Assembly: GCA_977017575.1 (NCBI GenBank)
Contig: CDRNVI010000066.1
Location: 1 to 64,000 of the forward strand
DNA from: Paramoeba atlantica
Lineage: Eukaryota > Protista > Discosea
Length of the DNA: 64,000 bases
Reading direction: 5' to 3'
Below are positions 6,957 through 51,080 of this stretch, in pieces (position 1 is the first letter of the stretch; each line of letters starts with the position of its first letter). The position numbers were made by a program, and so were the translations under genes. A model generated the notes under the pieces. The model was given only the letters and a program-made list of their open reading frames with translations, did no database searches and was not told the origin of the DNA.

Positions 6957-7391
6957 CCGTAGAAACTTCAATTAAGGGTAATTAAAATTAAGGCAACTTT
7001 AATTAAGGCAGCTTTAATTAAGGAATAATTATTTTTTTGTCATTTTGGGGAAAAAATTGGGAAAAATTAATTTCATGATTCTGACTCAGACTTCTCCTTT
7101 CAATGATCGTTTTAGCATTTCTCTCACATGTTGAATTGGTTGAAGACCGTAAAGGTAGGCGAAACAGGCGAAGCTCGTCTAGAAAAGTTCGAAAAATATG
7201 ACAAATGATCAGAAATTGAGCACTTTTAGCAGAAGTGTGATACTTATGCTACAAACGACAATATTTATATAAGACCTGTTTTGGGCTTTTATCAGCGCCA
7301 TTTTAATTAAGGCAACTTTAATTAAGGCAATAATTAATTTTTAAATCCGTTCTGCCTTAATTACTTTTATCCTTAATAACCGTTTCACCGG
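6957..7391. mobile_element. Tc1/mariner (pogo/Tc2-like) MITE, TA|CCG...CGG|TA, degenerate ~40-bp TIRs
   Basis: taccgtagaaacttcaattaagggtaattaaaattaaggca versus RC of right end taccggtgaaacggttattaaggataaaagtaattaaggca. TTAATTAAGGCA subrepeats lie near both ends. Confidence 0.7.
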
Positions 7392-7566
7392 TATAACACT
7401 GTATACTAAAAGCACTCTTTTAGCAAAACAAATTCAACTTCATTATTGAACTATCCAGACCCTCTAATATAGAATTCGTGCCCTTCTCACATCCATAGTT
7501 ACACTTCAGATCCTGATTCTGGTATTCACTACGAAGAAGTTATTGTTTCCTTTTTTACTGTTTCTC

Positions 7567-8577
7567 TTAAATTTCCTCTTGAGCGTATCGATCAATAAGC
7601 ATGAGACCACATGCGACATCAAGTATGGACTTAAAAAAGCTTTTACCCCAACTCTGCACAACTTCGGCAAACTTCATTCGAAGTTTGTCTGCTTCATAAG
7701 TTTCCAACTTTAGAAATTGCGCAGGCCTATGGTACATAAGAGCCTCGATCATTGGCGAAGATAAATATGCAAGAGTAACTGATTCACCATCATCAACGTA
7801 AGCACGAGCGACAAATTGATTTTCCATCACCGATAATGGAGGAAGCAAAGAAATTATTTCTGCAGATACAATAAAAGGAGTTTCGCTCCCTTGAACTGGT
7901 AATTGAGAAATTTTCATGGTTGCTAAGGAGGGAGAAGTTTGCTCAGGAGTATGCAGCTGGCCTTGAGATATGGTCTTTGCTCCTGTGCAAGGTGTCGCTT
8001 CGATTTCTGATTCAAGATTGTGAAGCATGCGAGTTCTATTGAAACGTTCGGCTCGTTTTTTTCGTTTCTGAGTGTGCTGTGCATCTAGAGCGGCAACAGA
8101 ACCTCCTAATACAGTCATGCAGCTGTCATTAAGAAGAAGAACACGATTTCTGATTCGAACGTTTTCAATGAGGACTTTTGCACCCGGAACCAGACCTTCA
8201 TCAAGCTGAACGCATGGGGAGTGTTCAATTGCAATCCAATCCCTCACACCGTCCGTCAGGCAAAGTTTGCGTGGTCCTTTGCAAGTTGGCATGTGAGACG
8301 CGGATTCTGCCTTTGACTGTTCCAGGAGACTTTGAGAAATATTTTCTATTTCATTCAGCTGAAAAATATGTCGTGAGGTTATAGTGCAGTCATCCACTAA
8401 TGGAAAGCCTTTCAAAAAGGGAACGCGTCTGAAATCTTGATAAAGAAGCATCGTTAGAGCCTCTAAATCATTTTGTGCTGTAGAACGGCACCACCATTCC
8501 TTCCACCACTTGAGCTCAAGATCAATATTACAAATATTTTTCAGCGTGCTGCGTACCACATTCCATGGATCGCTCAT
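7567..8577 (-). CDS. RMI1: RecQ-mediated genome instability protein 1
   Basis: OB-fold motif RKLCLTDG..IAIEH..L..L.PGAKVLI.NV.IR..VLLL plus a C-terminal YVDDG segment. Confidence 0.85.
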   Translation of the reverse strand: MSDPWNVVRSTLKNICNIDLELKWWKEWWCRSTAQNDLEALTMLLYQDFRRVPFLKGFPLVDDCTITSRHIFQLNEIENISQSLLEQSKAESASHMPTCKGPRKLCLTDGVRDWIAIEHSPCVQLDEGLVPGAKVLIENVRIRNRVLLLNDSCMTVLGGSVAALDAQHTQKRKKRAERFNRTRMLHNLESEIEATPCTGAKTISQGQLHTPEQTSPSLATMKISQLPVQGSETPFIVSAEIISLLPPLSVMENQFVARAYVDDGESVTLAYLSSPMIEALMYHRPAQFLKLETYEADKLRMKFAEVVQSWGKSFFKSILDVACGLMLIDRYAQEEI

Positions 8578-8678
8578 TCAAAAATACGGTGCATTCGAAG
8601 ACGCTTGGCAAGTAAAATTTTATGCGTTTTAGTTTGTTGAATTTTTTAGCTTGTAAGATTTTAGCGAAACATAAACTA

Positions 8679-9140
8679 CCCCATGCCATTAATAACGATA
8701 ATGATAAACACCATTTTTTTTTGAGATTGCTATTATTGCCATTGGAGGGAGTGCAAGTGGCCCTTCGAAGGTCTCAAAAAATACCTACAGCGTTCGCCAC
8801 CGGTCGTCACCGGTCGTCGCCGACTCCCAGAAAACGACACTTTGAAGGCCAAAATGCTCAACTTTATGACTGACTGATCAATATAATTATACATCGGCAA
8901 AAACAATTTAGCATTTTATATACCACCAGTTTATACATTCCTAACTATTTAGTTCCATTAATGCAAAATTCTCGCTGTGCTAAGAAATTTTGTGATACTT
9001 GTGGGGAAGATTAATGGTCGATCCTTCGAACCTCAAAAAATACCCACAGCGTTCGCCACCGGTCGCCATCGATCGTCACCGGTCGCCATTGGTCGTGACC
9101 GTTCGGCAGCGACCTACAGGTACTGTCTGCACCCCCTCCA
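8679..9140. repeat. Decayed copy of the family at 49405-50917, including two copies of a block with 10-bp ACCGGTCGYC-like repeats
   Basis: 8679-8720 resembles the 49405 TIR region. ccttcgaa..ctcaaaaaatacc.acagcgttcgccaccggtcg occurs at 8762-8823 and 9024-9140, and inverted at ~49985-50105. Confidence 0.8.
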
Positions 9141-9189
9141 TTGGAGAATACGCGGTCAACAGCAGATACCTGGAGACATGTGGGGGAGA

Positions 9190-9330
9190 TACCTGGGAGA
9201 TATGATAAGAAATTGCTCTACGGTTTTCTAGCCGTTTGGTTTCACAATATACCACTTCTTGCCTCCTACCCAGAGCTCAATCCGCCTTGTGGCGCTCTGG
9301 CCTATGATCACAATAGGCGATTAACCAAGA
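9190..9330 (+). pseudogene. Possible Tc1/IS630-type DDE transposase relic
   Basis: FGFTIYHFLPP then, after a short gap, PELNP (9270-9284) and LW. This resembles the LPPYSPELNPIE..W motif. Confidence 0.4.
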
Positions 9331-9394
9331 GAGGATTCGTGTGTCCCTAGGCATGATGTTAACTTCGAAATTTGACCAAACCTGCGAGATAATC

Positions 9395-9700
9395 ATTTAG
9401 AAGTTAGATGGTGAGAAGTCAACGACTAGAAGATCATGAGTTCGATGTTTAGAACTACAGGTTGAGCGACTAGAGACTAGATGAGGTCTGAGTTAGATGC
9501 TTTGACAGTGAAGCTTAGAAATTAGATGCTTAGATAACGGATGTTAGAAGTTAGACGTTTGGAAATAGAAGTTGAGAAATCAGGTTCCGTGAGGTCTGAG
9601 TTAGATGCTTCGATGTTGACTTTGTAGGTTAGGTGCTTAGACGGCGGGTGTTAGAAGTTAGGTGCTAAAAATGGAGTCTCAGAAGTAGGTGATTGGAAGT
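9395..9700. repeat. Degenerate TTAGRN-rich tandem array with ~109-bp higher-order repeat
   Basis: Recurrent ttagaagttagatg/ttaggtg; tgaggtctgagttagatgctt at ~9482 and ~9591. Confidence 0.75.
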
Positions 9701-9730
9701 TATACTCTAATTAAAATTCCAGCAAGTTAG

Positions 9731-10015
9731 ATGTTTGAGAAGAAGACCTGTACCAGGCAGATTCCTAGAGACGCAAGGCCGAGTACTGCAGATAGCGAGA
9801 GACTGCAAGTAGCAAAGCTTCTCGAAGAAGGGAAATACTCCGACCAGAAGGTGAGCGGCAGCTTGTTGTTAGGGATTGTAAAGGTATTCCAGGCGCGAAA
9901 GCAGGCGCTTGACGTTCAGGAAGGGGGCCCTGAAGACAAGTTGCCTAGCGAGAGGATGACTAGAGAGAAAAGAGGTCCACTTCATGGTTTGATTGACACC
10001 TACGATGATCTTTAG
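9731..10015 (+). CDS. Orphan 94-aa ORF with a Rad21/Rec8 N-terminal-like motif
   Basis: KVSGSLLLGIVKVFQARKQAL resembles kleisin [21 protein letters not shown]. It lies opposite to the cluster strand inside the repeat island. Confidence 0.3.
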   Translation: MFEKKTCTRQIPRDARPSTADSERLQVAKLLEEGKYSDQKVSGSLLLGIVKVFQARKQALDVQEGGPEDKLPSERMTREKRGPLHGLIDTYDDL

Positions 10016-10762
10016 CCTCTTGCTCTTTATACAGTGTGTCAAGCCCAGCACGGAACAATTTGAAGGAGCCAACGCGAAGAAGATTGCGCCAGAAGCTAAA
10101 AACAACTTTAAGCGGCGAAGCTGAATGTGAAGTATTCGAGACGCTTCTGTTTTCCTTCTGTCTCTGTTAATCCTTATGCTTTTGTATCCAATTTTTTAGT
10201 TGGTTCGTTAAACGTGGAGATTTTCAACGAGGAGCGCGCAGGGGTGGCGAGTGACTACTATCAGCGCAAAAAAAAGCAACCTACATACTACGTTTCTGAG
10301 AAACGTTAAAATACTAAAATATATTTAGGGGGCAGTTAAATGTTCAGAGGGAGCAATATTTTCACAAAATATCAAGGTATATTAACGTTGACTTTGTGGA
10401 ATATCATCATAGAGAATTAAGAAGAATTGCTTACCCTATTCGCCGAGTGCTCGTAAATATAACGCGATATAGTAAATCGCGACACAATAAATGAAGAGAT
10501 GATAAATCACGGGAGAAAGTAAGAAGGGAACACAACAAAGTTCATGACGTTTGCACCATCATTCAGTTGGAAGTGCTACGGAAAATTGCGAGCTCCCAAA
10601 TATTCTTCCCCATACAGAGAGAAACATAATTTTTTCTTATGTAAAATAGGGAAAACGTGACTATAAACAAGTGAAGTTTATATACAACTGCATTTAAAAG
10701 TTTATATACAAAATGTATTATGCAGTCCAGGCCACACTGTCGGCCCCTCAGGCCACAAAGTA

Positions 10763-11514
10763 CACCGTGAGAGCTTTTGACCTAATTCCTTCGGCATTCG
10801 ACAGATCTAAAAAAAGTGGAACGTTTCCCGTATTTTTTTCACACGTGGAGCCCCCCACATGAGTAACGGGTCAAAAAAACATGAAAAAAGGCAATTTTTT
10901 GAAATATTTCGCGAAAAGTACAATTTTTAGGTGTTTTTTCCTATAAAATGGTAGCTCATCACATGCTATTTAGGAAAACCCCTGTTAAATCTACTGAGAA
11001 TCTACTGAGAAACTTATTCTAACACATTCCGGAACGAACCCCCCCAATTACGCACAAGATAGCCCGATGCGAACTCTCTGAACGTCTTAAAATCATTCGT
11101 CAGACCAAAAAAAATCAGTTAAAGAAATTAACTGGTTAATTTCTTTAACCTTTGGTTAAAGTTCTTTAACCTTTGGTTAACGGTCATTAAAAAAGCTTTT
11201 GTGATGATTAAGCGCAGTCCCCGTCAGGCTCTGAATTGTATGACTTCAATGACCAAACGCATGTACATGTAAATTATGCAGCGTGTAAAGGGGAACCATA
11301 CAAGGTACATGTATTGGTTTGTCCCTTCAAATAAGTATTTTTTGTGATATTTTTCATTTTGTTTGTCAAAAAAGACTTTTTAAGGGAAAAATCAACTTTG
11401 GGGGTGCACACAGGGGGTCTAGGGGTCTCCGCGGATGAAAAAAATACGGAAAACGTTTTACTTTTTCGAGATCTGTCGAATGCCGAAGGAAATAGGTCAA
11501 AAGCTATGTCGGTG
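10763..11514. mobile_element. Inner element with ~94-bp TIRs (CACCG...GCTTTTGACCTA.TTCCTTCGGCATTCGACAGATCT...)
   Basis: 10763-10856 versus RC of 11422-11514. Confidence 0.85.
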
Positions 11515-11606
11515 TGCTAGCTCCTCCGTTAAATAGCGGTGGCTGTTGGTAAACGGGCTTCGCAAATTGCTTCCCACTAACGACGCCGCGTATGGCTGAA
11601 AATATA

Positions 11607-11699
11607 ACCGCCGGGAGTCGAACCTGCGACTACCAGATTATGAACGGCAGGTCTTGCCAAATGGATTACCTGGGTTCGAGTCCCGCAACCTACGTTTTT
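11607..11699 (-). ncRNA. tRNA(Met)-like relic with two oppositely oriented B-box/T-arm motifs; not a foldable tRNA
   Basis: Minus strand reads taatccatttggcaagac-ctgccgttCATaatctgg-tagtc-gcaggttcgactccc. Plus strand has gggttcgagtccc (11672-11684) followed by TTTTT. Acceptor and anticodon stems do not pair. Confidence 0.35.
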
Positions 11700-12041
11700 G
11701 AGCACCGTGATTTGTGCCTAAATCGAGGATGGAGGGGGGCTGGACCCCCTTTTCTCACCCTGCTGGATCCACCCTGCCCCGGACACCATAAAGAAGGGAG
11801 AGGCGGAGGTTGTATACAACCCCCGCAAACACGGTGTACTCCGTGGCCTGGGGGGCAAACAGTGTGGCCTGGACTGTACCCCCCTACTTATCTGTCACTA
11901 CTTTTCGCGAAAAGACGACAGATACATGTAAATAGGGGGGATAGGGGTGCGTCAGATATCTAGGCGGATCAGTGTGCGACAGATAACTAGGGAGGGGGTA
12001 TGTCACAAAAAAAGTCAGAACATGGAATTACAGAAACGATT

Positions 12042-12297
12042 TAAACCCCATTCCGGGTTAATGTACCTCGCTATTGTACCGGGGGGTACAATAACTGGGA
12101 ACGCTTGGTTTTATTGTACCCCCCCCTGCGCAAAAGAGGGCGCCGCGAAGCGGCGCCATTTTTTTCGCCTTTTTACAGATTTTCATTTTCATTTTGATTA
12201 CAAATTTACCATTTCTACCAGCGAAGACATGAAAATAGAGAAGTATCTGTATGTAGTTATTATACCGGGGGGGATACATTAACCCGGACGGGGTTTA
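12042..12297. repeat. Small inverted-repeat element, 14-bp perfect core TCCGGGTTAATGTA / TACATTAACCCGGA
   Basis: 12052-12065 and 12275-12288, extendable by AAACCCC/GGGGTTT. The interior holds gtacc(c/g)-run motifs and a GCGAAGC hairpin. Confidence 0.75.
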
Positions 12298-12390
12298 TAA
12301 TGGCACCACGAACGACCATTCGCTTTAAACACAAAAAGAAAAAATGTAAGTTTCATTTTATGATTTTTAAAAAAAAAACTATTCTTTATA

Positions 12391-12481
12391 CTCTTCGTTA
12401 AACGCGATGGTTGTTTTCAACTTAGAAGTCACTCATGCTGCGCGCTTCGCGTTGAAAACTCCCACGGCGTTTAACGAAGAG
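12391..12481. repeat. Hairpin with 31-bp arms (27/31 paired) and 29-nt loop
   Basis: ctcttcgttaaacgcgatggttgttttcaac ... gttgaaaactcccacggcgtttaacgaagag. Confidence 0.85.
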
Positions 12482-12671
12482 CCTAAAAAAGAAAAATCGC
12501 AAAAAAATGATCATGAATAACTATTTTTTTGGGTCAAAAAGCCCCTCCTCCTTTTAGGCGAAAATTGCGAAAGTTTACTCCAAATTTGGGCCGTTTTTGA
12601 TGCCTTACCAATAGGGGTATGAGGCGAATCTGACGAAAAAAACTCTGGTAGCTGGAAAAAAACTGGTAGCT

Positions 12672-12850
12672 GAGGTCCAAAACTCTCAAAATACGTTTTA
12701 GGAGTCGATTTTGGAAAAATATTATTTTTACTTTTTTTTGGGTCCAAAAAAAGTTTTTTGTTCACCTCAAAAATTTCGGAAATTTTGACGTTGTCGGACC
12801 CTTCCTACGCGTACCAGGGGGGGTACCCCCAGGTGGGGTGGTGGAAAATC
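12672..12850. repeat. Dispersed repeat homologous to the interior of the hAT element (5412-5580)
   Basis: ggtcc.aaactctcaaaa.acg...taggagt.gattt.ggaaaaata and the GC-rich ggggtaccc block are shared in direct orientation. Confidence 0.75.
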
Positions 12851-13470
12851 ATAGCCGCGGCATACTCTAACACTTCCCTGCGCTCGATTTTGAAAAGCAA
12901 AAAATTCGAAAAAATTAATAATTAATGGCAGGGAGAGTACATAGTTTTCGACAAAAAAACGCGATTTTCAGGCCAAAATGTGAAATTTTAACCCGAATTT
13001 GGTCCGTTTTTGAAACCTTACCAGTAGTATTTTAGTTTTTTTAAGCTTTAACGGACGTTTTTTTAAGACACAAATTTTTTGTAAGAAAATCCTGCGTGCA
13101 TGAAAATAAGTTGATAATATTTATTATCAACGTATTTAATAGTGCCATTGTGTTGTGTGCAGCAAGGTTCTGGTGAAAACAGTTGTGCAATTCACGTGAT
13201 AAATAATATGTATCGCACCTTATTTGAAAACCTTATTTGAAAACCGTGATATTGACATTCTTTCCCGTCGTAACCTTTGTGAAAATTGGAGTCCGATAGC
13301 TCCCTATGTTCTACTTTAACCCATATAATATATGGGAGAGACATGTATGAGTTTACAAAGGAAAAACAATGAGAAAATTATAGACTGACGGAAAAACACC
13401 TAGGTAAACCTACATGTATTAATTATGTATGTATTTATTATGTGGTTATCGAATGTATTAATATTTTTAA

Positions 13471-14344
13471 TTAGCGGACACCCGCCTTCCTCCACTCTTT
13501 TACCGCGGAGGATAGTATCGCGGCGTTGCCTTTTTGAACAGCCACATTAATGGCTTGTAGTGCATGACGCAGGAAACCTTTCCTGTCATACGTATACCTT
13601 GCGATCTCCTTTAGGAGGAGTACGGTGTGCTTCCCTGCCACACCAAAAACGGTAAATGCAAGGGGGTAGAAATGCATACCCCTTTTCGTGGCCATGTCAC
13701 TGTGCGCTTTTACTTTCAAGCTTTTCACCCTTTCTAGAGTGTTGCCAGGCGCTACCCATTCGGCCTTAACATAAGAAGGGGCAAGGGGGTTAGCGACGGT
13801 CACGTCCACCAGACATATCTTCCCTCCCAGCATAAAGCAGACGTCGGGGCCCTGACCAGCAGAGAATCGGGGTTCATGATTGTCAGGAGTGAATCCGTAC
13901 TGTCGTAGCAAGTGCACGAAGGCATTCTTAACAAGTTTGTGGCGAGTGGCCGCAGTGTCGCCTTTTGAATACAAAAAACGTTGCTAAATATAATGTGTAT
14001 TCTTAGTCTCTGGTTAGCGGCATCTTTTAAGAAGGATGCAGATCCCTGACGATGATCCATTTCCTTAAAGCACAATTTCGAAGTACTGTCAGCATTCTTG
14101 CAATCACACAAGACGAAATAAAATAAAAGGATAGATCTCCAAATTTAAGTGGGTGCTCAACGTTCCCAGACTGAACATTCTTCGCATTGCTTGAAATATC
14201 CGTGACCTGTCTCATTGTGGTCAAGCTTAATTGGCTTGGTCCATCAGCCACCCGCTGATTAACAGCATCGCATAGTTCGTTGCTAATACGACGCGCTGCT
14301 CGCTTCCGAGACCTTGGAGTAATATCTGACTCTTCCATGGTCAT
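13471..14344 (-). mobile_element. 3' fragment of a CRE/SLACS/CZAR-like non-LTR retrotransposon; REL endonuclease ORF 13471-13974 is open, upstream part frameshifted
   Basis: RH..V, PDV, DVTVANP..PSY, K.K, FYPLAFTVFG..G and AVQKGNA form the restriction-like endonuclease C-terminus typical of CRE-clade elements. No RT domain lies in the window. Confidence 0.8.
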
Positions 14345-14440
14345 ATCAGGATACTAACTTGATTAACGAACAGTTTAAAGTAACTAACACTTATGACTTT
14401 GATTAAAAGTACACGAGCGTGGGAAAAAGTATGGGGAATA

Positions 14441-15483
14441 CTCCCCCTTTCATAATTCTTTATAAGTTCGAGCCCAAAATGATTCATGGTTCTATATAAA
14501 TTTATATACAACTTTAAAACGCCTGAAAAACGCCAAACGATCAGTGGAAAAAACGGAGCTCGCGGCGCTGCGCGCCGAGTATTTCTCATTCTGATTCGCG
14601 TATCAAATGTATATTTTGAATTTCCTTTTTTAGACATTAAGCAGTTTAATACTTTTAGAAACTTCTCTTTCGTTTCTTTGTTTCGGTCCTCTTTTTTTGT
14701 CAAATTCATCAATGTGGTCAAATGTGTGTGACTTTACATATCAAATTCGGTCACCTATTCATGCAAACACACCATGAGAGCGCATAAGAACTAGTAGAAA
14801 TAATGATCATAATTTATATAAATATTTTTATAAGTAAACCCACCTCGGTACCAAACACTTATAAAGCTTTATAGTCTGCGTCATATTGATCCCCCCTCTC
14901 TGGAAATTTTAGTTTTTTTATCCGATTTTGCTCATCTATGCAGCATTCGAGAGATCTCATTCCCATAGGAAAGTACTTTGCCACTGTTTTTACCTTTTAG
15001 CCAGACGCCTCGAAATAGTGGAAAACTACACGTTTTTTTACTAAAATCTTGAATAAATTTAAAAATTGCTTATTTTTTCATTACTTTTTCTTCTTCCAGC
15101 ACCCCGAAGAGGCCGAAACGGCACGTATCCTCGTCTGAATCCCTTAAAAATACCTTTAGTTACATGAAAAATACGAATTCCTCGAAAAAACGCTTTGTAG
15201 CAAAGCGGCGATCACACATGATTTTTGTCATTTTCCTAACTTTTTCTGTTTTTTCCTAACTTTGGGATTCTCTCCAGGAGGCACTCCCCCTCCTTACGTT
15301 TATTGCGGCAAAATACTTTCCTACCGGAACGAGATCTCTCGAATGCTGCAAAGATGAGCAAAATCAGATAAAAAAACTAAAATTTCCTGAGGGGGGGATC
15401 AATATGACGCGGACAGTATAATATAAATATAAATCGCCGAAACACTTATAGTTTATATTTATAAAGAATTATGAAAGGGGGAG
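14441..15483. mobile_element. Stowaway-like Tc1/mariner MITE, perfect 25-bp TIR CTCCCCCTTTCATAATTCTTTATAA, TA TSD on both sides
   Basis: TA at 14439-14440 and 15484-15485; TIRs at 14441-14465 and 15459-15483. Confidence 0.92.
14874..15416. mobile_element. Nested MITE with ~110-bp TIRs, right end GACGCGGACAG|TA
   Basis: 14874-14985 versus RC of 15307-15416 (gcgtcatattgatcccccc...gcagcattcgagagatctc...ggaaagta.tttgcc). Confidence 0.9.
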
Positions 15484-15688
15484 TAGTAAGAAGTTGGATA
15501 AAAGGTACGAACGCCTTTATGTAGGTCCCAGAGGCACAATAACATCGTATTTTGCACCACAAGAAAGCAGAAACCCTGTATTAGTACCGAAACTTTTTTC
15601 GGTAAAAAAGCCCCCTGTATCACTTAGAACACAATTAGATAGGATAATGTAAGACTTTTTAGAAGTCACTCTGTAAACTAAAATATGT

Positions 15689-15728
15689 GGTAATAGGAGG
15701 TAATCGGAGGTAATTACCTCCTATTACC
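15689..15728. repeat. Perfect 16-bp stem hairpin
   Basis: ggtaataggaggtaat-cggaggta-attacctcctattacc. Confidence 0.85.
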
Positions 15729-16380
15729 GTCCAGGGTATGATATATGTAACGTAATTAATATTTTAACCCGATAAAATATGTGTAAATTACTCTCTGGGC
15801 TTCTTTTAACCCGTAGGCGCATGCCTTCAGCTTGTAGTACCCCATTGGGGTAGAAAGGAATCTTCCTAGGCAATAAAGATACCGCTTCTGTAACATTTCG
15901 TTCCCTCGCTTTTTTTGGCGACGGACCCCCCTAGTTATCTGTCGCACCCCTACCCCCCCCCCCTGGTTATCAGTCACCTTTTCTCGAAAAGTAGCGACAG
16001 ATAACTAGGGGGGGTACAGTATATACAAAGTTTATTTAACAAATGAAGTTTACATTATAAAATTATTGTACTTACTGTATCCCCGTAGTTGTCTGTCATT
16101 ACTTTTAGGAAAAGATGTCTCCTCTTTCAGTCTTGACGGATCATTTCATGCTATCTATCCTCTCCAACAAGGCCGAAGCCACGAATTTGTGGGTTTCCAT
16201 ATGGTTTCGGTATTTTCGGAGCGTACTACCTTATTCGCGATTCGAATCACTACATCTATGAGCAGCTCTGCTGCGAGCAGACCCGGAACTTCTCCTCTCT
16301 CTACGGCTGCCGGAGAGAAGCAATCCGAAGGAGTACTGCGTGCGGGACTCCGACCGGAGCAATCATTTTATTGCTTGCTG

Positions 16381-16668
16381 CTACTCCTTTGCGTCGAACA
16401 TATCACATTTATAAGCCCGTAGAACAGATTGACCAAAGGCTAGCAATAAGCTATCCCCTTGAACCTCTTTTACTAAGCGTTCTTCCTCTTCTTCATTGAT
16501 ACAAGATAACGGAATTTCTGCTTGCGGTATCACATGGGTTGTAGCGGATACTGTCTCTGTGGTCATATAAATTTTTTTGGTATCGGGCTCAAAGCTATCC
16601 TCCTTGTGTCTACCAGAATATTTTGTGGAGGATAGATGCAATTGATCATCGGATTCTCCTCTATTCAT
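16381..16668 (-). CDS. Hypothetical protein (95 aa), possibly truncated
   Basis: ATG ORF on the cluster strand. Coding-like sequence continues after the stop toward the TE island. Confidence 0.45.
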   Translation of the reverse strand: MNRGESDDQLHLSSTKYSGRHKEDSFEPDTKKIYMTTETVSATTHVIPQAEIPLSCINEEEEERLVKEVQGDSLLLAFGQSVLRAYKCDMFDAKE

Positions 16669-16908
16669 AGCTCACTTTAAAATCATAGAGAAAATCATAT
16701 TAGCAAAAGATAAAAAAGATTTAAAAATGGTACTTGGGACCTCAAAAATGATCTGAATCAGTAAATGGTAGTACAATGCACTATGATGTTTACATCTAAA
16801 CTACATGTACATGTAAATACGTGGTTCTGCAACACAAAATGCGTAAAATTTCCGGATTGAAGTATAGTGATCGCGGCTTTGAAGGGCAAACGATTGGCAT
16901 GCAATCAA

Positions 16909-20241: not shown

Positions 20242-20458
20242 TAAAGAGTGCTATGTATACCATACTTAATAGATTTAATCCTCTTTAGCACAAGCTTAAA
20301 TGAAATAACATTTATGAAGCAATACATACTGTATTAATTTAATGACATAGAGTGAAGAATAAATTGGCGGAAGTACCGTTACTCCCCACAAGGCACAGTT
20401 GAAGAATAAATTGAAGAGTGATACTAAATGAACATTAGAAGTAGCTTACAAGAGCATT

Positions 20459-40933: not shown

Positions 40934-42373
40934 TTAAAACCTTCGCAGAGGGAACAGAAGTTTTTTCCAAGCCCTTTTGTAACGGCCCATAAAGCGCATT
41001 TTGAAACGACTGCATACATAGCCGAATGTCGTTCGCGGTAGGAGGGCGTAGTCAAGTAAACTCTGGTGATGCGAATACATCTTTTCGACCTCGGGACGAC
41101 GCGTTTCTTGCAGCCAGCGTGGGGCGTTGACAGTATTACTGGCTAGTTGGGAGCTAAGTTCCATACAATCCTGAAAGGCGATTGCCTCTGTGACGTCAAT
41201 CGCATCAGTGTGTGAACAGTGCGCCGAGTGGCCTATGCGAAGAAACTTCCCATCCATCTCTGACCAAAAGGGGAGAACGTACTGCGGGGTACGGTAGACC
41301 AGAAAGTCTCTCGCCGTTGTGTACTTTTGCGTGTGAAGAATCAGAGGTTTAAACATTGTGTGGGAAATGTAGCCCGGGAGATTGCCAGTGAAGACGCGCA
41401 CCAGCTCTCGCCAGAAGGTAGTGGGATCGCAACTCGTACGGCGAGGATCGGAAAGTTCCTCGGAAAGGCTCAAAATGACACTGTAGTACAACCGTGAAGG
41501 GCTCATCATCGGTCTTACAATCACCTTAGACTCTGTTGGAGTAAGAATTTCAACGATTTCTTGACTCCCAGGGGTAAACCGTTTTTCCATGTCCGTGACG
41601 GGTGAAAACTCTGGTACTTTGTACTCCAACCACCGAAGAGATTTCGCGTCACTTAATGTCTCCTCGTTCTGCACATGGTACCTTGTTTGCTCATCCGTTT
41701 GAGAACAGTCGGGGAGTATCGAGTGATGACGTGATGTAGCAATCACTTTCCGGTACACCCGTGTTACGCCTGGGTTGTTCAGAAACCGAAGACTGACGCA
41801 ATCTTCTCCCGCCACGGTCATTGTCCGCGCATCCACAACTGAGCCTGGGGAAAGTACTGTACATGCGTACTGGCTGAGCCGGCAAAGTGACAGCAGAGAG
41901 TCCTCAATGCGTTGCCGATCGCAGCAGTAGAACGTCGGTGCCTCATCGCCCTTCTCACAGAGTCCCGCGAGATCGAGATCGCAGAGGTCATTCCCTACGT
42001 GGTCGAATGAGATCAGCCGACCTGCCACACTACCGTGGGGGACGGAAATCCCCATGACATCCCCGAGCACTTGTGTGGCACCCGGGGTAAGCACCACGGA
42101 CCCCCGGTCCTGGTCACTCTCCGGACTCTCGGTGATCGCGAGATCACACTCTAGCCCACGAAGGCGAAGGCAAAGCGCCATAAAGGGTGCAGTGATTCCC
42201 TCTCCCAGAACGAGGTACCGGTTTGAGGGCCCCGAGGAAGCACCGGGCTGGAAAGTAGGGGCTGGAGCAGGTGGGATGGGGTAAGAGAATACTCCTGCGG
42301 CTTTTGCGCCACGACTGCTGAGAAGGTGAGACGGAGAACGTTGAAACGAAAGACGAGGTGTAGAAGGTTGCAT
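40934..42373 (-). CDS. FAD-dependent monooxygenase-fold protein with degenerate motifs
   Basis: YLVLGEGITAPFMALCL Rossmann-like start; IGHSAH at the GD motif position. First ATG used. Confidence 0.65.
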   Translation of the reverse strand: MQPSTPRLSFQRSPSHLLSSRGAKAAGVFSYPIPPAPAPTFQPGASSGPSNRYLVLGEGITAPFMALCLRLRGLECDLAITESPESDQDRGSVVLTPGATQVLGDVMGISVPHGSVAGRLISFDHVGNDLCDLDLAGLCEKGDEAPTFYCCDRQRIEDSLLSLCRLSQYACTVLSPGSVVDARTMTVAGEDCVSLRFLNNPGVTRVYRKVIATSRHHSILPDCSQTDEQTRYHVQNEETLSDAKSLRWLEYKVPEFSPVTDMEKRFTPGSQEIVEILTPTESKVIVRPMMSPSRLYYSVILSLSEELSDPRRTSCDPTTFWRELVRVFTGNLPGYISHTMFKPLILHTQKYTTARDFLVYRTPQYVLPFWSEMDGKFLRIGHSAHCSHTDAIDVTEAIAFQDCMELSSQLASNTVNAPRWLQETRRPEVEKMYSHHQSLLDYALLPRTTFGYVCSRFKMRFMGRYKRAWKKLLFPLRRF

Positions 42374-42459
42374 GTTAAGGGGTTGTGATCTCAGTTTAGT
42401 GACAAAAACGTTATGTTGATCCAATATGATAGTAGATAAATTTTAGCACTCTTCTAGTA

Positions 42460-42640
42460 CTGTTCCCCCTCCTTTAAAGCGCACCTCAATTTTCGTCAAA
42501 AGTGCACTTAAACGGGGGAAGGGTCTGAATCACTACATAAAAGAAATTGGCGCTGTTTCGCGGCACTGCAGTTTGCACCTCAACTGTATGTGCACTTAAA
42601 CGGGGGATCGGACCGGGTACGCTTAAGGGGAGGGGGACAG
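42460..42640. mobile_element. 181-bp MITE, TA|CTGT(T)CCCCCTCC...GGAGGGGGACAG|TA
   Basis: TA at 42458-42459 and 42641-42642; ~21-bp TIRs; internal gcacttaaacggggga occurs twice. Confidence 0.85.
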
Positions 42641-43026
42641 TATTTCTTCAAAGTTTAGATGAACACATTTTTTTCGAATACAAAAGACCCAACGTTACCA
42701 CCAATGTGTGTATTATTGTAGCATATTGTAGCATATTGTTTTCGCGTTCGCTGACGGCGTTGTATTTAATTTACGTTGTCTGATAGCCACGTGAGCTATG
42801 CCCTAGCACAATCACGCACAGAGTGACCATAAAATGATGCCACACACATTGATTGATGCCACACATTGATTCTGCTGAAAGTATTTCAACCGCCGTCATC
42901 CCACCATTTAAGCGCAGACGAGCATGTTACGAGTACGTGCAGAACACGTTAAGATCTTCAACTTACCGAGATCTTAAACATCTCTCTACGAATCAAGCTG
43001 TCCAAGCGGTAAGGAAGGAATTCACT

Positions 43027-43869
43027 TTATAATTCGTCCTCGCCATAATAGCGAGATACAATACTTCCCCCAGGTGGGAATCGGTGGGAAGTGTTCTGCT
43101 CTTCTTGGTCTCCGGTGCTATGAAGTAATGGGTCATTCGCTTTTTTCAAACCGTAGGGAAAATCGTGATGCGTCTCAATGGGTCCAAAAACTCGAGCCCT
43201 ACTGCCGCGCAAATGGCAAATTTTATCCTCATCGGTAGAAGAACTTTCTTCTTGAGCATTAATCTGTTTTTTATGGCCTTTAACTCTTTTCTTTGTCTCA
43301 TATTTATGAAGTTCGTGCTCAACGGCTATTGGGTCAACCTCTTTTACTGTAACCGGAAGGACTGGAGTTTCGTAAGACTGACCTAGCGAGACACAAGGTT
43401 TGCCAGTGGTAACAGAGAGCGATCGTTCCATTTCGTTGCGCTTTGGATTATCACCAAGTAATCCCGATGTAGATGATTCAAGAATGCGGCGCTGCACTTC
43501 TATTGTCTCGTCCGTTCGTTGTTTTTTCCAACAGTGTTCCTGCTCACTAACTATGCTTCTTCTAGTCATCACATTGTCTGCAGAACTAAGGTGGGGATTT
43601 ACTGGGTTTATGCGATCCCTCTGTGTTACTGACATTCCGTACTGCATATCTTTCACACAACATTGACACACATTTTTTAGACGTGCACAGGTGTAGCACA
43701 TTACTGTGGAAGCAAGCTTTCGTGTTACAGTGCTTGGACGCCACTGATAGCTCGTATAACGTCGTTGACATATGTTGCATTCCTTCCCATTTGTCTTTTT
43801 CAGGAGTTGAACCTTTCGATTAGACCCCAGGCAACTTGAACACAATAATGGTATGTCCGTTTCTTGCAT
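43027..43869 (-). CDS. RBM22: Pre-mRNA splicing factor RBM22/Slt11/Ecm2-like (N-terminal zinc domain only)
   Basis: PLLCSSCLGSN, GKECNIC.R.YT.YQWRP, C.TCARLKNVCQCC..D..YG. Confidence 0.85.
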   Translation of the reverse strand: MQETDIPLLCSSCLGSNRKVQLLKKTNGKECNICQRRYTSYQWRPSTVTRKLASTVMCYTCARLKNVCQCCVKDMQYGMSVTQRDRINPVNPHLSSADNVMTRRSIVSEQEHCWKKQRTDETIEVQRRILESSTSGLLGDNPKRNEMERSLSVTTGKPCVSLGQSYETPVLPVTVKEVDPIAVEHELHKYETKKRVKGHKKQINAQEESSSTDEDKICHLRGSRARVFGPIETHHDFPYGLKKANDPLLHSTGDQEEQNTSHRFPPGGSIVSRYYGEDEL

Positions 43870-44269
43870 GATTCAGAATGCTATCATTTCATTTTACAAG
43901 AAAAAGCTTATTTTCAAGATATACGCTCTGATATTTATTGCGCTCTTATTATGATATTCATGCGCTAATATTATGATATTTATGCGCTCCTATTATTGAC
44001 TTTACCTATAAACTAATTTTAGTGACATACAACTACGAACTTCGTCGAAGTAATATTGGACCAATATTTACAAGCGTTTCTAGGCGCTCTCACCCAGTCA
44101 CTCTTCTTAGTATTAAACAGCTACGCTGTACTATTGCGAAAGTTCACATAGAACTCTGAAAAAAAAGAACCCCACAAAATCCAACAGGGATTGTTGACTC
44201 ACAAGTTTAATTATTCCAATACATTCTTCGAGTCGAAGTCTTCGTCATGCTAGGAGTGCCAAGAAAGAA

Positions 44270-46192
44270 TCACATACCGCCCCAGTTAAAAACTTCTCGT
44301 AAGAGAGAAGTTGCATAGCTTCCAGGAGGCAGTGCGAAAGATAAATGGAGCGATCTCATTGGCTTCGATTCCTCAACTATTTCCCTGTTTTCAGGTGTTG
44401 TTAATTCCTCAGTGGAGAAGTCCATCTTGTCAGGTTTCACTATGAGGTATCGGTAACTGCCCTTTATGTTGTATTCACGTGCTTGGGTCGTAAATATAGA
44501 TTCACAACCCAATTGCGCTAATACCCTTTCGTAAAACATGCGATTTATGTGATGCTCAGGGAACAAGAGTCCTGGATCAGATCCCGGCAAAGGCAAGACA
44601 ATGTCGGTTATACAACACTTTTCAATGTTCTCACGCGTTACCACTTGTGGCTTGTCAATACTCGATGCACATGTTGTATCGTTGTGGGAAGATTCTGACG
44701 TGTCAAGATCAAGATCTGATTCTGTTCTCTCATGCTGACATCCAGTATTTGGCAGCATGAGATCTCCGACCACTACAATACTCCCAAAACAACGAATTCT
44801 CTCCGATGCTACACAATTCCATACCCAGCTTTGGACAGCATGAACGTACAGACTTCGAGTATTGCGTGGTAAGGTCATCCAAGCTCTTTGATAGTCATGA
44901 GGTTCAGAAGCCAGAGATAATAAAATTCCCTTCTCAGTCCTGAATTTAAAATTCAGCTCAGCCGCTGCCGAGGAAAATACACCTTTGGAGCCCGGTTGTG
45001 CAGACACAGACTTGATATCAGGGAGGTTTATTGCTCGCGTAGCATTGGCAAATTTCGGAGATGTTTGAGAAGCGTTCAAAAATATTAGACCGATTGCCCT
45101 ATCCAGCTTGCCCAGCAATACTTCTATGCCTATTTCATGTGTTGCTATTGGTGCGGTACCAAAACGTTGAGGTCCATAAAAGTTAATAAAACCAACGCTT
45201 CGGATATTTGCAAGGAGTTTATCTTCGCATACTCCCCAGTGCGATACTTCTCTCACTACAATTTTAAAGTAATTTCCGCGATGTGCGCCAAGCCAGAGCT
45301 TATCAGGTTTGCGCTCAGGAGAACTGACTGATACTCGGCCATGTGTATTGAGCTTTTCAACTTGACTCCAATCCCCTCGGTAAAGTGAAACACGTTGGAA
45401 TGTTTGCGCCCTTTTGTCTTTTGCACCGGAAAATCCGAATAACTTGTGAGATAGATGCAAGCTACGGGAAAGGTATTGGATGGCAGAAGCTGTATCCATG
45501 TTCCTTTTTTCCAGCGTGAAATGCAAGTAATATGGACTCTCGCATGCACGGGAGCGTTTGCGATCTTCTGATCTGCAAACTCGAATATCAAAGGAGTTGT
45601 CACCACAATATGTAGAGGTTAACAGTGGAAAACAAAATCTTACAGCTTCGTGCACTCTCGTGCGTTGTTCTTTGTTCATAGGAACTAGGAGTTTGATATT
45701 CATTATTCCTGTACGTGGCAGTTCGGAGAGCTTCTCTTGAGTAGAAGTTTCTAATGCAAAGCCCGCTTTTGGTGTTGCACCCCCTAATTTAGATTCTCGA
45801 TCCCTGTGGGAAGGCGTTTTCTTACTGCAAAGCTGCAGTACCGTTTCTAAGGCGTGCGTACCAAAGGAATCCTTAAGGAGTTGAATGTGATCTTTTTCAG
45901 CATCACTTAGTTCGGTTTTTGCTGGCGTACATGTATTGGTATTTATAGGAGGATCTTTGGATCCCAACATACCCTGATCGCAGCCGTCCGCCTCTTTTGA
46001 ATATTCTGCTATTTGCGGGACATGTATGCCCGCAATACACCCGTCTTGGCCAATTTCATGCACGATAAAATCTTCAGCGCACGCCTTCAGAACTCCACTA
46101 GGAGATATGTTACTGTGCTTGGCGAACAGCTTTGTTATAACGCCCATAGAAGCATCACTTCGATACGTACTTGGAGGCTGCTGAGAATTCAT
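44270..46192 (-). CDS. PUS7: TruD-family pseudouridine synthase
   Basis: GAKDKRA.T.Q catalytic motif, GNYF.IVVR, FINFYGPQRFG, YVHAVQSWVWN, F.LPPGSYAT..LRE. Confidence 0.97.
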   Translation of the reverse strand: MNSQQPPSTYRSDASMGVITKLFAKHSNISPSGVLKACAEDFIVHEIGQDGCIAGIHVPQIAEYSKEADGCDQGMLGSKDPPINTNTCTPAKTELSDAEKDHIQLLKDSFGTHALETVLQLCSKKTPSHRDRESKLGGATPKAGFALETSTQEKLSELPRTGIMNIKLLVPMNKEQRTRVHEAVRFCFPLLTSTYCGDNSFDIRVCRSEDRKRSRACESPYYLHFTLEKRNMDTASAIQYLSRSLHLSHKLFGFSGAKDKRAQTFQRVSLYRGDWSQVEKLNTHGRVSVSSPERKPDKLWLGAHRGNYFKIVVREVSHWGVCEDKLLANIRSVGFINFYGPQRFGTAPIATHEIGIEVLLGKLDRAIGLIFLNASQTSPKFANATRAINLPDIKSVSAQPGSKGVFSSAAAELNFKFRTEKGILLSLASEPHDYQRAWMTLPRNTRSLYVHAVQSWVWNCVASERIRCFGSIVVVGDLMLPNTGCQHERTESDLDLDTSESSHNDTTCASSIDKPQVVTRENIEKCCITDIVLPLPGSDPGLLFPEHHINRMFYERVLAQLGCESIFTTQAREYNIKGSYRYLIVKPDKMDFSTEELTTPENREIVEESKPMRSLHLSFALPPGSYATSLLREVFNWGGM

Positions 46193-46711
46193 CTAGCTCA
46201 AACTTCCTTGGATGTCCTCCACCTTTAAGTTCTACTCCTCAGATGTAAGGCGGCTTTGATGGAAATACCAGTAAAATGCAACCCAGGAACATTAAAAGAG
46301 TAAACGCCAAAATCCCGCACACTAAGTAGATTTCATTACAAACATATTTTCTTGTATAGGCCACATGAAACAGAAACAGATTGGCTTGAAGTCCTTCAAT
46401 AGGCTAATGAATAATGAAGAAAAGGAAGTCGAATAGAAGTAAAAAAGGATGGGTACTGATCTACATACAGTAGTCTATTGCACATACAGTACTGTACATA
46501 CAGGCTATTGTGCGCCCAATAAGAAAGCTCAATAAAACATAAAAAGGATTACCGATCTCCAATCCTTGCGCAAGTGGTCACGAAAGGGAGGTTGACTCCT
46601 CCATTTCTTCATGTCTCTAGAACATTCCTAGCTTCATGTCTTTAGAACAAACAAACTTCCGATGTGAAAAAGTATGAGGACAAAAAATCTTTCATCCATG
46701 TTTGACGCATT

Positions 46712-49183
46712 TTATGAATGAGGTTTTGGGTGAGACTTTCGGTTGAAATATTTACCCTTTTCCTTCGATGATTTAGGTGTTGTCACCGTACCGCGGGAGT
46801 CACCACCAGCAGAAGGTGCTTTCTCATTTGAAGGCGCAGATCTCGGCGGAGCATCCGAGCTCTCCAGACTACTGGACTGTGAGGACCGTACCGGCGACTC
46901 TCTCTGCATCCCCGCCACTGTTTTTGCGGGCATTTTCGTTGAGGATGGCGGAGTAGAGGGCCGATGGCGATGACGCGAGATGCCTCCTCGTGAGCTCCCT
47001 TCGACCGAAGCCTCGCTTTGTTCAACCTCTTTCGTAGGTAAAATCGGCCGTGTAGATCCCGCAGAAGCACTTGTTATGATCGTAGGAACTACCGGAGCCA
47101 CGGTGACCCCCGGAGGAGTAGTTTGCGAGTTTGGCTCAAACGACACTCCCGTGGCAGTGAGGCTCCCCATTGGACTCCCGGGGGGAGGAGGAAAATTCAC
47201 CGGGGTCGACGCACTCAGCTGCTCTGCCAGCGGCTTGCGCTCCCGATCGTATCTCCCACGAGGGGCATGCGTAGCCCCGGTGGAGGCAGCACGTCGACCA
47301 CCCCCACCCCCTGTAGATTGCTTTGACTCCGGGTAATGCGTCCTTGAATAGTAATGTGAACCTCGACCCGTAGCACGGTTCGAATACTCCCCACTCGGCA
47401 TCGTGCCGTGCGCTATCCCGGAAACAAAAGCCTCACCTCCCCGTCCACTCCTTAACGGCTTAACCCGCGGGTCGTAGGCGCCCACATGGGTGTGAGCTAC
47501 CGGGTACCGGGCCTCCCAGGACAGCGGGGTGGTGTACTGAGCTGCGTACCCGTGAGGGTCGGGGTAGGGGTAGTGAGGGTAACCCGCGTGTGACGCTGTT
47601 GTGTAGGACCCGGACTGCCGGGCCTCATGGGACGGAACCGTCTCGGAGGGGTGGTAGTAGTACTCACTCGGGGTTCCTCCGAGAGAGCTCTCGGCGTAGA
47701 GGTGGTGCCCCGAGCCGTAGGGGGTGGTCATCAGCGGGGTAGGTACCTGGGCGCGTGAGGGTTTGAACTCCGGCGGGAGCTCGGACATGTCGGAACGGAG
47801 ATGACCCACATAGGGGGTAGAGGGGGTTTGGTGGGGGTAGGCGGCCGAGGAGGATGCGGCGGAGTGAAGGGCTTCGACGTCCCAAGGCTCTACCACGGTT
47901 CCGTCGGAGAGTGCATAGGTGTAGGTACCGTAGTTCACTGGAGGAGTGACCGAGGGGGTGATGATGCCATGGGTGTCCCCCGCGGGGCGAGGAGGGTAAA
48001 GGTGAGGCTGCGTCGAGACCGCACTGGTGCTCATGTCCTCTGTGGGCTTTGAGTACAGAGAGGATTCCGGGGTCTGTGAAGCATAGGATTCTGTGGCTGG
48101 AATAGCCCTCTCGGCGTTGGGGTGACGTAGGTGTTCCTGTTGACAGAGGTGCCGAAGCAGGCCGTCCTTTTCGCGAAGAAAAGAGATTCTAAGATCTGGT
48201 TTCCAAGTGTTTGGAGGTGATTCTGTGACCGTTTTAGCTGTTTTCTCTAAAGAAGTCACAAAACTAGGAGTAAAAGCACGTGCATTGGGATTCAGAAATG
48301 TTTTTGAAGCAGTTGTCTCTTTCGAAACGTCCGGAGTTTCTTCAGAAGTAGTTTGCTTGTCAATAGGTAAGGTACGTGGAATCTCATCTACCGACCTAGA
48401 TCTCGGGGCTTCCTCTTTAACTATGTTCTCGCTTATGAGTAACCCAGAAGGTGTTCCAGCTTCACGACGTCCAGGAGGAATGTATGCGTTGACATTCAGG
48501 CCACCTATCAGGTCACGAGACTTTTTCGGAGAACTTCTTCCTTTAGGACGTTCCACGCCGCTAAAAAGCCTTTCCTCATCATAATCTGCGCCTATCTCAA
48601 TGCCACGATCCACCGCATGTTGAAGATTGACGACCTTACCGCGTTCTATTTTTCTGGCCGCACGTTCAGCATATTCACGCTGATCCCTTGTAAGATTTTT
48701 AGGAATAGAAGTAGTATAAAGAAGCTCATCGTAAGTGCTTTTCCCGCGTACAAGGTGCTCATTTGCTTTAAATTGGTCCCAAGAGCCTGCTCGATGTGAT
48801 TTCTCCTTCTCCAAAACGTCATCTTCATCTTCGTCGTCCTCATCTGCCCAGTTCGCAAAGCTTGTCACTGATTTATCACAGCTTTCGCTTCTCGTGATTT
48901 GCTTCTCTCGTAAATGTCTCATGATGGAGCTTTGTTCTTGACAAATACGGGAAAATTTTAATTGAATGAGGTTAACAGTAGGAATCACGGACACATCCTT
49001 GGCATCACTATTTTCAGAAAGACTGTGTACTTCGCTGACTAGTCGTCGGCACTTTAGAAGCATTATCGCTTTTTCAACGGGGGAGTAGGACGCAAAAACA
49101 CCTTCTAAAATGGTACCATCAGCTAAATGGGCCGTGGCAACTTGTCCTACCATTTCCACAAAAGTGAATAAGATTCGTTCCAT
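46712..49183 (-). CDS. PBP1: Ataxin-2/PBP1 homologue (Lsm, LsmAD, PAM2)
   Basis: WDQFKANE...STYDELLYTT...A.R.AR.IE......H...RG LsmAD; PAM2-like FLNPNARAFTP; P/S/Y-rich tail. First ATG used. Confidence 0.92.
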   Translation of the reverse strand: MERILFTFVEMVGQVATAHLADGTILEGVFASYSPVEKAIMLLKCRRLVSEVHSLSENSDAKDVSVIPTVNLIQLKFSRICQEQSSIMRHLREKQITRSESCDKSVTSFANWADEDDEDEDDVLEKEKSHRAGSWDQFKANEHLVRGKSTYDELLYTTSIPKNLTRDQREYAERAARKIERGKVVNLQHAVDRGIEIGADYDEERLFSGVERPKGRSSPKKSRDLIGGLNVNAYIPPGRREAGTPSGLLISENIVKEEAPRSRSVDEIPRTLPIDKQTTSEETPDVSKETTASKTFLNPNARAFTPSFVTSLEKTAKTVTESPPNTWKPDLRISFLREKDGLLRHLCQQEHLRHPNAERAIPATESYASQTPESSLYSKPTEDMSTSAVSTQPHLYPPRPAGDTHGIITPSVTPPVNYGTYTYALSDGTVVEPWDVEALHSAASSSAAYPHQTPSTPYVGHLRSDMSELPPEFKPSRAQVPTPLMTTPYGSGHHLYAESSLGGTPSEYYYHPSETVPSHEARQSGSYTTASHAGYPHYPYPDPHGYAAQYTTPLSWEARYPVAHTHVGAYDPRVKPLRSGRGGEAFVSGIAHGTMPSGEYSNRATGRGSHYYSRTHYPESKQSTGGGGGRRAASTGATHAPRGRYDRERKPLAEQLSASTPVNFPPPPGSPMGSLTATGVSFEPNSQTTPPGVTVAPVVPTIITSASAGSTRPILPTKEVEQSEASVEGSSRGGISRHRHRPSTPPSSTKMPAKTVAGMQRESPVRSSQSSSLESSDAPPRSAPSNEKAPSAGGDSRGTVTTPKSSKEKGKYFNRKSHPKPHS

Positions 49184-49688
49184 TAGTGACGTGGGTGTAT
49201 GTGTGAATAAAGTAATCAAAAAAAGATAACATAGAAAGTAAGTGGAAGTGTTCAGGTATTGACGAATAGTGCAGTATAAATTATGCAATATTTATATTTA
49301 ATATGCAATTGCAATACTTATATGTATGAACAGTTCGAAAAGCAATTCTAGACTATCAGATTTACAGGCTATGTGTTGGCTAAAAATTAATCAAAAGAAG
49401 AGTACACCCCCTCTCATAAATAATGATAATGATAATAACATTTTTTCCGAGAGAATATCATTATTATTATCATTATCATTATTTCTGAATGCAATAAGGG
49501 GAGATGAGAACAAAAATACATCTGTTTAGTAAGATACACTTAGTCTAAAACGGGGAAAAAACAAGACGAGATTAAAGAGATCACGGAAAAACCCTCAAGC
49601 CGACATGGAGGAGTAACGATAGAATGAAATATTTGCGATAATTTTTGAGTAATTGTCACGGCCCGAGGTGAAAATCTTTTTTCAATTA

Positions 49689-50893
49689 CTGTCACCCCCC
49701 CTTTATACTTACACCGGTTTCGGTACTTTTGGAAGTATAAAGGGGGGTCTGACTTTCCTAAGTATAAAGGGGGGGTGACACTTAAGCGCAACCAGGTTTT
49801 GGCCTAACATTGCGCATAAGTAGCCGGGTCAAAAAAAGAGGTGAAAAAAAAATTTCGCGCCGCTTCGTGACGCGTGTTTAAATCATGAGTTATGTACGCG
49901 GGGTGCCCTGGGAAAAATGAGTTATAATTATATTTATTAAAATTAATTAAAGAAAATGGTAGTTGGTCGGCGTTAGTACCATCAGTGGAGGGGGTGCAGA
50001 CGGTACCTGTAGCTCGCTGTCGAACGGTGGCAACCAATCTCGATCGGTAACGACAGATCGCGACCGGTTGCGAACGCTGTAGGTATTTTTTCGAGGTTCG
50101 AAGGGTTTACCGATTCATTGGAAGATCAGTCGGACAGGGGGTGACGTGTGAGAGATAACTAGGGAGGAGGTACAGTACTTCGCTTGTATGGTTACTTATG
50201 CCCGCGAATGACCACATCACGAGGTAAGTGCCTTTTTCGCGAGCACCCGATCAATTGTAGGAAAAGAACGGACTTTTAAGAGCTTGGGTCCGAAATATAA
50301 ATTAAAGTTTAGTTTATCATGCACTTGTAGTGCAATTACCCACGTTATATTTACCCGCCCTACATCTAGGCGGTGCCGCACGCTGGTGCACTGATCATTT
50401 CAAAGGCGTACAGTACGTGGCAGGAGAGTTCCTCTGATGTACAGTACAGTATAGAATGCAAAGACTCGCCGTACAGATCGGCGGAGGTCAGTGTGGATCA
50501 GAGGAGATCGATGGAGATCATTTTTCAACGCCCAAAGGGACTGCCTGCAGACTCTCCATTTCAACAGCGGCGAAAATTGGTACAAAAATTCGTACCACAA
50601 AAAAAAATCGCGCCGCTTTGCGGCGCTGTTCTTCTGAACGATGCGTCAAAATTGCGCTTAAGTGGCCGGGTCAAACGGTTGCGCATAAGTAGGGGGGGAC
50701 AGTATCTCTACACACACCTCTAACGTTTTAAAGAAAAAAGTAGAAAATTGTTCAAAAAAAAAGATTGCGCCGCGAAGCGTTTTCGACCGGAAGTAAAGGT
50801 TTATAAAGGGGAGGTGCTGATTTTTCGTCTGGATGAAAACGGAAGTATAAAGGGGGGGTGACCCCCCTGAAGTATAAAGGGGGGGGATGACAG
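49689..50893. mobile_element. Nested element, TIR CTGTCA(C/T)CCCCCCTTTATACTT, TA TSD
   Basis: TA at 49687-49688 and 50894-50895; aagtataaagggggg subrepeats at both ends. Confidence 0.85.
49779..50702. mobile_element. Third nested element of the 42460 family; right end GGGGGGACAG|TA intact, left end eroded
   Basis: 50651-50702 RC (ctgtcccccc.tacttatgcgcaacc...cacttaagcgcaat) matches 49779-49830 and the 42460 TIR. Confidence 0.65.
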
Positions 50894-51080
50894 TATCATT
50901 ATTAATGAAAGGGGGTGTATTGCAAAAAGCATTAGTTGAAGCATAAAACTAGAGAACAAACTAGTTAACATTCTTTTCAGTTTTTTTGATGTCTTCTACG
51001 TCAAAGTACAAGAAATTCCTATTTACTAAATAGTACTTTGTATGCTTTTTTCGTATGATATTTCAGGCTATAGAAAATAT

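Follow-up and report, generated by a model that had tools for sequence, protein, structure and literature searches.

The stretch analysed here, called the window, comprises the first 64 kb of contig C66 (CDRNVI010000066.1) from a eukaryotic assembly of 45.7 Mb in 248 contigs. From 16.9 kb to the end of the window, all long open frames are located on the minus strand and all encode housekeeping proteins; the products are Sec16, PIF1 helicase, poly(A)-binding protein, ataxin-2, PUS7 and COG4. Ubiquitin-L40 and RMI1, situated within the first 17 kb, are also encoded on the minus strand. A spliced-leader copy with the core CAGTTTCTGTAC lies 11 kb past the window. The genome has been read as kinetoplastid-type because of the same-strand gene array and the spliced-leader core, and both fit this assignment. 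The spacers of the array harbor elements with inverted ends next to a TA dinucleotide, some standing alone and others nested in one another. They are very probably non-autonomous cut-and-paste transposons, i.e. MITEs (miniature transposable elements with inverted repeats), of the IS630/Tc1/mariner superfamily. A twin of the whole window is present at C44:314754-379480 and is 99.2-99.6% identical. The assembly contains many near-identical contig pairs of this kind, and because of these twins the match counts given below overstate the number of independent loci about twofold.

Ten families (A, A′, B, C, D, E, F, G, K and X) were distinguished, which form five groups according to their end sequences. 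The ends of A and A′ read C(T/A)CCCCCT.TCAT. Families C, X, F and D share CTGT followed by a run of C, while B and E begin with CAGTCC and carry inverted repeats of about 47-114 nt. The ends of G and K are CCG and AACCC, respectively. The inverted ends measure 13 nt in A′, 25 nt in A and up to about 114 nt in B, and the element lengths span 68 bp to about 1 kb. Members of one family were found at a dozen or more loci in unrelated flanks, with 78-97% identity to the window copies. A Pfam search of the open frames inside the elements gave no match, and no coding capacity was found. Rfam scans at gathering and E-value thresholds identified no ribozyme or RNA family, only sub-threshold hairpin matches. 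Searching metagenomes with the ends of A and of K gave no match. An initial annotation, made from the letters of the window, had claimed at least five TA-targeting families with terminal inverted repeats; ten have now been counted, and every element on its list is multi-copy with inverted ends. Its coordinates were exact, with TA on both sides, for the elements at 6957-7391, 14441-15483, 42460-42640, 49405-50917 and 49689-50893.

Families G and C occur as standalone elements. Family G (435 bp, positions 6957-7391) is located between ubiquitin-L40 and RMI1. Its ends start with CCG and contain repeated TAATTAAGG motifs, and TA is present at 6955-56 and 7392-93. The genome yielded 79 candidates, with alignments spanning TA to TA, and TA was observed in 15 of 16 end contexts. 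Family C (181 bp, 42460-42640; TA at 42458-59 and 42641-42) occupies a 600-bp spacer with same-strand genes on either side. Its ends comprise CTGT, a C run and TTTAAGCGC. A first look at the genome provided 108 candidates; all 40 that were scored were positive, at 78-84% identity. Among 15 copies examined, TA adjoined the left end in 13 and the right end in all 15.

The first nest, at 10.7-16.0 kb, involves the families E, F, K, A and B. The family E element (10723-11876) has a length of 831 bp without its insert and inverted ends of 47 nt starting with CAGTCCAGGCC. The element and the TA on its right side were found as annotated, but the left flank of this copy is TG; other E copies (L095-L098) have TA flanks and lack the insert. 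This insert, named H (323 bp, 11506-11828), is without inverted ends and without a clear duplication. At least 35 copies of H exist at 85-93% identity, and tRNA-like stretches occur on both strands, although ARAGORN calls no tRNA. Insert H may be similar to short interspersed nuclear elements.

Family F is represented twice in this nest. The left part of one copy (11874-12383) begins with the end CTGTACCCCCC followed by GACAGATAACTAGG repeats and has 3 nt in common with the right end of E. K interrupts this copy, and a hairpin-bearing element truncates it near 12383. The second copy (15921-16019, next to TA at 16020-21) consists of a truncated, inverted left-type end; its repeat layout mirrors the left end of F, not the right one. 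The pairing of 11874 with 16019 as the termini of one element, as given in the initial annotation, was therefore not upheld: both are left-type F ends in opposite orientation, and a single element of 4.1 kb is unsupported. Among 85 genome candidates for F, the complete copies elsewhere are only 320-420 bp long and flanked by TA. Family K (252 bp, 12044-12295), absent from the earlier list, is nested in F with ends starting AACCCC and TA at 12042-43 and 12296-97. The K end core gave 86 exact matches in the genome versus 0 in the control, mostly as pairs 250-370 bp apart.

Family A (14441-15483) measures 500 bp without its insert. It has perfect inverted ends of 25 nt starting with CTCCCCCTTTCAT, and TA at 14439-40 and 15484-85. 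The 25-nt end pattern had 50 matches in the genome at up to 3 mismatches versus 0 in a reversed control. About 12 independent loci provided 18 distinct end contexts, every one of them with TA. Family B (543 bp, 14874-15416) is nested in A, with inverted ends of about 114 nt and TA at 14872-73 and 15417-18; the genome holds 23 end matches. The family end is CAGTCCGCGTCA (CAGT). In the window copy the left end is 2 nt short and the right end reads CTGT. The annotated element, its coordinates and its TA flanks thus stood, but the CTGT end type is a copy-specific change from CAGT.

The second nest, at 49.4-50.9 kb, is formed by A′, D and X. Family A′ (49405-50917; 308 bp without insert) has ends starting with CACCCCCT(C/T)TCAT and TA at 49403-04 and 50918-19. 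It is uninterrupted at two other loci, L050 and L051, with TA at 6 of 6 ends. Family D is a composite of 1205 bp (49689-50893) nested in A′, flanked by TA at 49687-88 and 50894-95. Its ends read CTGTCACCCCCCC and then TTTATACTT. A relative of D elsewhere is a TA-flanked micro-copy of 68 bp (L079:1064-1130). Inside D lies a family X element (49780-50702), a family with a full length of about 1 kb; here the left end is about 12 nt short, and the right end consists of a G run and ACAG, followed by TA. Family X matched many contigs at 84-95% identity, and TA adjoins both ends of a full copy (L106). The ends of X resemble those of C. An inverted match of 109 nt (85%) links the X interior (49983-50091) to window positions 8763-9143 in the spacer after RMI1, where decameric CACCGGTCGT-like repeats occur at 8790-9110. 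In the twin C44, a 244-bp deletion relative to window 50803-51046 at a TTT microhomology removed the right ends of D and A′ and 130 bp of flank.

TA adjoins 74 of the 80 distinct end contexts across all families, against a TA background of 0.06-0.07. The initial annotation had noted TA at one or both boundaries of these elements and had named single-copy repeat pairs without consistent TA junctions as an observation that would speak against its reading; all families proved to be multi-copy. Since TA might belong to the repeat itself, nested insertions were compared with uninterrupted sister copies. For B in A, nine uninterrupted A copies have a single TA and the window reads TA-B-TA. For D in A′, two uninterrupted copies (L050 and L051) have a single TA, versus TA-D-TA in the window. 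For K in F, seven F copies have a single TA, versus TA-K-TA. The difference between filled and empty site is exactly 2 bp in all three nests, and the third flanking bases beyond TA differ between the two sides. The 2-bp TA duplication was thereby demonstrated by three filled/empty comparisons in addition to the end contexts.

Tourist-like (PIF/Harbinger), piggyBac- or hAT-type MITEs were considered, in which TA would form part of a longer duplication that TA-rich flanks could mask as TAA/TTA or TTAA. This is highly improbable. A 3-bp TAA/TTA duplication of the Tourist/PIF-Harbinger type was not found in the filled/empty pairs, nor was a TTAA duplication of piggyBac or an 8-bp duplication of hAT found in the flanks, which differ left versus right past the TA. 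Duplications of 3, 4 and 8 bp (PIF, piggyBac and hAT, respectively) are excluded because the gain is exactly 2 bp. Equally remote is an explanation without any transposon, by which duplicated segments, assembly twins or structural palindromes would contain TA as part of the repeat. Near-identical contig pairs do inflate the copy counts, but each family has copies at a dozen or more loci whose flanks are unrelated, and empty sites have one TA where filled sites have two.

Transposases are abundant in the genome. Profile searches for DDE_1 and DDE_3, suggested as a check by the initial annotation, gave 106 matches for the pogo-like DDE_1, many in open frames of 450-700 residues. Out of 676 candidates for DDE_3, 150 matches were scored; open frames of 330-365 residues contain many of them. 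The Tc1-like proteins sampled combine HTH_Tnp_Tc3_2 and DDE_3 domains. One of them matches the Sleeping Beauty catalytic domain (5CR4) with an E-value of 5e-16, and the spacing from the second D to the E is 35 residues in four Tc1-like proteins (DD35E). Elements of Tc1 alpha and beta end with AACCCC and are flanked by TA. Tc1 delta elements are likewise TA-flanked, with inverted ends of 110 nt consisting of CAG and a G run. Mirror-image Tc1 elements at L067, L068 and L069 (C30:191300-196100, C12:420700-425400 and C56:70400-75100, respectively) carry two transposase genes and TA-flanked ends CAGTAACT; their arms of 1.2-1.3 kb are 100% complementary.

Tc1 elements have inserted into MITEs. A Tc1-alpha copy (L047, C55) in a family A MITE has TA on each side, while uninterrupted A copies have one TA. 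A Tc1-beta copy (L030, C4) lies at a TA in another A copy, where one junction was read. In addition, a frame of 320 residues at L047:2160-3122 (C55:116959-117921) encodes a DDE_Tnp_IS1595 domain of the Merlin type; it is located inside Tc1-alpha inside A, a nest of three layers.

A comparison of the MITEs with the transposase loci revealed no similarity except to MITE copies nearby. Several candidate masters were rejected. The Tc1-beta at L030 was considered for family A but lies at a TA inside an A copy. At L079, a 59-nt match to a D end beside a Tc1 element turned out to be the separate 68-bp micro-element. At L107, a pogo-like frame 1 kb from a partial G match was considered as the G master and proved to be the neighbor of a complete G variant. 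Two pairs of K end cores, each bounding an interval of 2.2 kb (C16:175442-177631 and C29:217849-220051), are candidate masters.

Resemblances between ends were found for K, B and E. The ends of K are organized like those of Tc1 alpha and beta, starting with AACCC and having a run of C about 23 nt inward. The ends of B show local similarity to those of Tc1 delta (z about 9 against shuffles), and B is the only family with similarity to a transposase-carrying Tc1 family. All 14 ends of Tc1 alpha, beta and delta contain the hexamer AGATCT at a distance of 79-108 nt from the terminus, against a background of about 0.09 per end. All 13 B ends have it about 80 nt inward, and 3 of 5 E ends at 80-81 nt; the other MITE families lack it. 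This palindrome may act as an inner site for binding or as a host-factor site. We infer that B descends from, or shares its ends with, the long-ended Tc1 families, and E less surely so.

The pogo-like and Tc1-like groups are members of one superfamily and have the TA duplication in common. Some or most of A, A′, C, D, F, G and X might have been moved by pogo-like DDE_1 transposases and not by Tc1-like DDE_3 transposases, which is conceivable but rather unlikely. The many long DDE_1 frames would agree with such an origin, as would the lack of any match between a Tc1 end and these seven families. Against it, the one pogo-like locus examined (L107) lies beside the complete G variant and not around it.

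The assignment to IS630/Tc1/mariner-type MITEs, already contained in the initial annotation, is supported by the exact TA duplication together with the many Tc1-like and pogo-like transposases of the genome. A transposase encoded elsewhere in the genome would bind the inverted ends, cut the element out and insert it at a TA. Gap repair would then leave a TA on each side. Because the interiors of the elements are rich in TA, later elements would land in earlier ones, producing the nests at 10.7-16.0 kb and 49.4-50.9 kb in spacers of the same-strand polycistronic array.

Several results weigh against this assignment. The mariner model PF01359 found no match in the genome, although control genomes were equally silent. 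None of the roughly 40 transposase loci examined contained an autonomous element whose ends match those of one of the ten families. The only apparent master, L047 (C55), with an A-type end and a Tc1 frame of 373 residues, was rejected as the master of family A; its other Tc1 end adjoins internal A sequence, and it is therefore a Tc1-alpha nested at a TA in an A copy. The E ends are similar to one Tc1-delta copy and not to the other. No presence/absence difference of window MITEs was detected between this contig and its C44 twin. The presence of all window elements in the twin and the divergence of the copies give no indication of recent movement of these particular families.

These last points, and the failure to find a master, also favor a reading of the elements as old fossils, the transposases of which are now extinct with nothing mobile today. 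Its probability comes close to an even chance. The copies are 78-97% identical, and a contig pair as similar as 99.2-99.6% shows every window MITE on both sides. In contrast, a deleted Tc1-alpha copy of 930 bp is present in one member only of a twin pair (L037 versus L036), the arms of the twin-gene Tc1 elements are 100% identical, and many transposase frames are intact. The comparison of L036 and L037 was not counted as a footprint, as a 127-bp tandem-repeat difference blurs the empty site. Recent activity is plausible for Tc1.

A further difference between the twins is an insertion of 939 bp in C44 (C44:329231-330170), absent from the window at 49277/49278. It is without a target duplication and has a long hairpin at its end. 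The hairpin recurs in inverted orientation at window 12382-12490 and also in L070. The insertion may be a Helitron-like or other element without terminal inverted repeats, polymorphic between the twins. Nested palindromic repeats are present at window 51086-51343, where a perfect inverted pair of 27 nt (51223-51249/51287-51313) lies within a 33-nt pair (51086-51118/51311-51343). A related arm occurs in L074, and these repeats are probably another small family with inverted ends. At the very start of the contig, window 1-233 contains an inverted repeat of 97 nt (99%), with related sequence at 5039-5178 and 6842-6917. It may be a genuine palindrome or a fold-back artefact of the assembly.

The elements share their main features with known Tc1/mariner MITEs, for example the plant family Stowaway and families derived from mariner or Tc1 in animals, fungi and some protists. 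They are small and non-coding, possess terminal inverted repeats and a strict 2-bp TA duplication, reach many copies, are nested and have an intergenic location. They differ in the kinetoplastid-type host and in ends unrelated to those named families that could be tested. Stowaway is a plant MITE family moved by mariner-like Osmar transposases, its DD39D partner. The first 13 bases of family A, and likewise the A′ ends, resemble the Stowaway end; the label Stowaway-like of the initial annotation is taken as a resemblance only. The long inverted ends of B and E, which start with CAGT as do those of the genome's Tc1-delta family, recall Tc1 elements of the DD34E/DD35E type, e.g. Sleeping Beauty and Tc3, and the Tc1 transposases of this genome align to the Sleeping Beauty core. 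Unlike those elements, B and E are without a transposase.

The kind of element is ordinary; the lineage is unexpected. The lack of DNA transposons in kinetoplastid genomes is a textbook example. Merlin relics in Bodo saltans and Perkinsela were described in 2021 as the first DNA transposons in kinetoplastids; they lacked ends and duplications and were judged immobile (PMC8101967). A survey of 57 trypanosomatids in 2025 found no class II elements (PMC12278014). The searchable literature contains no report of MITEs or Tc1 elements in kinetoplastid genomes, for which only retrotransposons and the immobile Merlin relics are reported (PMC8101967, PMC12278014). The view of a lineage nearly free of DNA transposons, expressed in the initial annotation, agrees with this record. 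The present elements resemble the Merlin relics (PMC8101967) as class II elements in non-trypanosomatid kinetoplastids, but belong to another superfamily and have clear ends, TA duplications and hundreds of copies.

The genome is tentatively proposed, with somewhat less than even confidence, to be that of the first kinetoplastid whose cut-and-paste mobilome is both large and diverse and was mobile at least until recently, comprising at least ten TA-targeting MITE families in polycistronic spacers. If this is true, the absence of class II elements from trypanosomatids would be a secondary loss. Hundreds of Tc1-like and pogo-like genes together with many MITE families in a relative would indicate tolerance of cut-and-paste elements in the group's ancestor. 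MITE hairpins transcribed as part of the gene arrays could in that case supply RNA silencing or change the sites of trans-splicing and polyadenylation. The genome would offer a system for asking how cut-and-paste elements coexist with polycistronic transcription.

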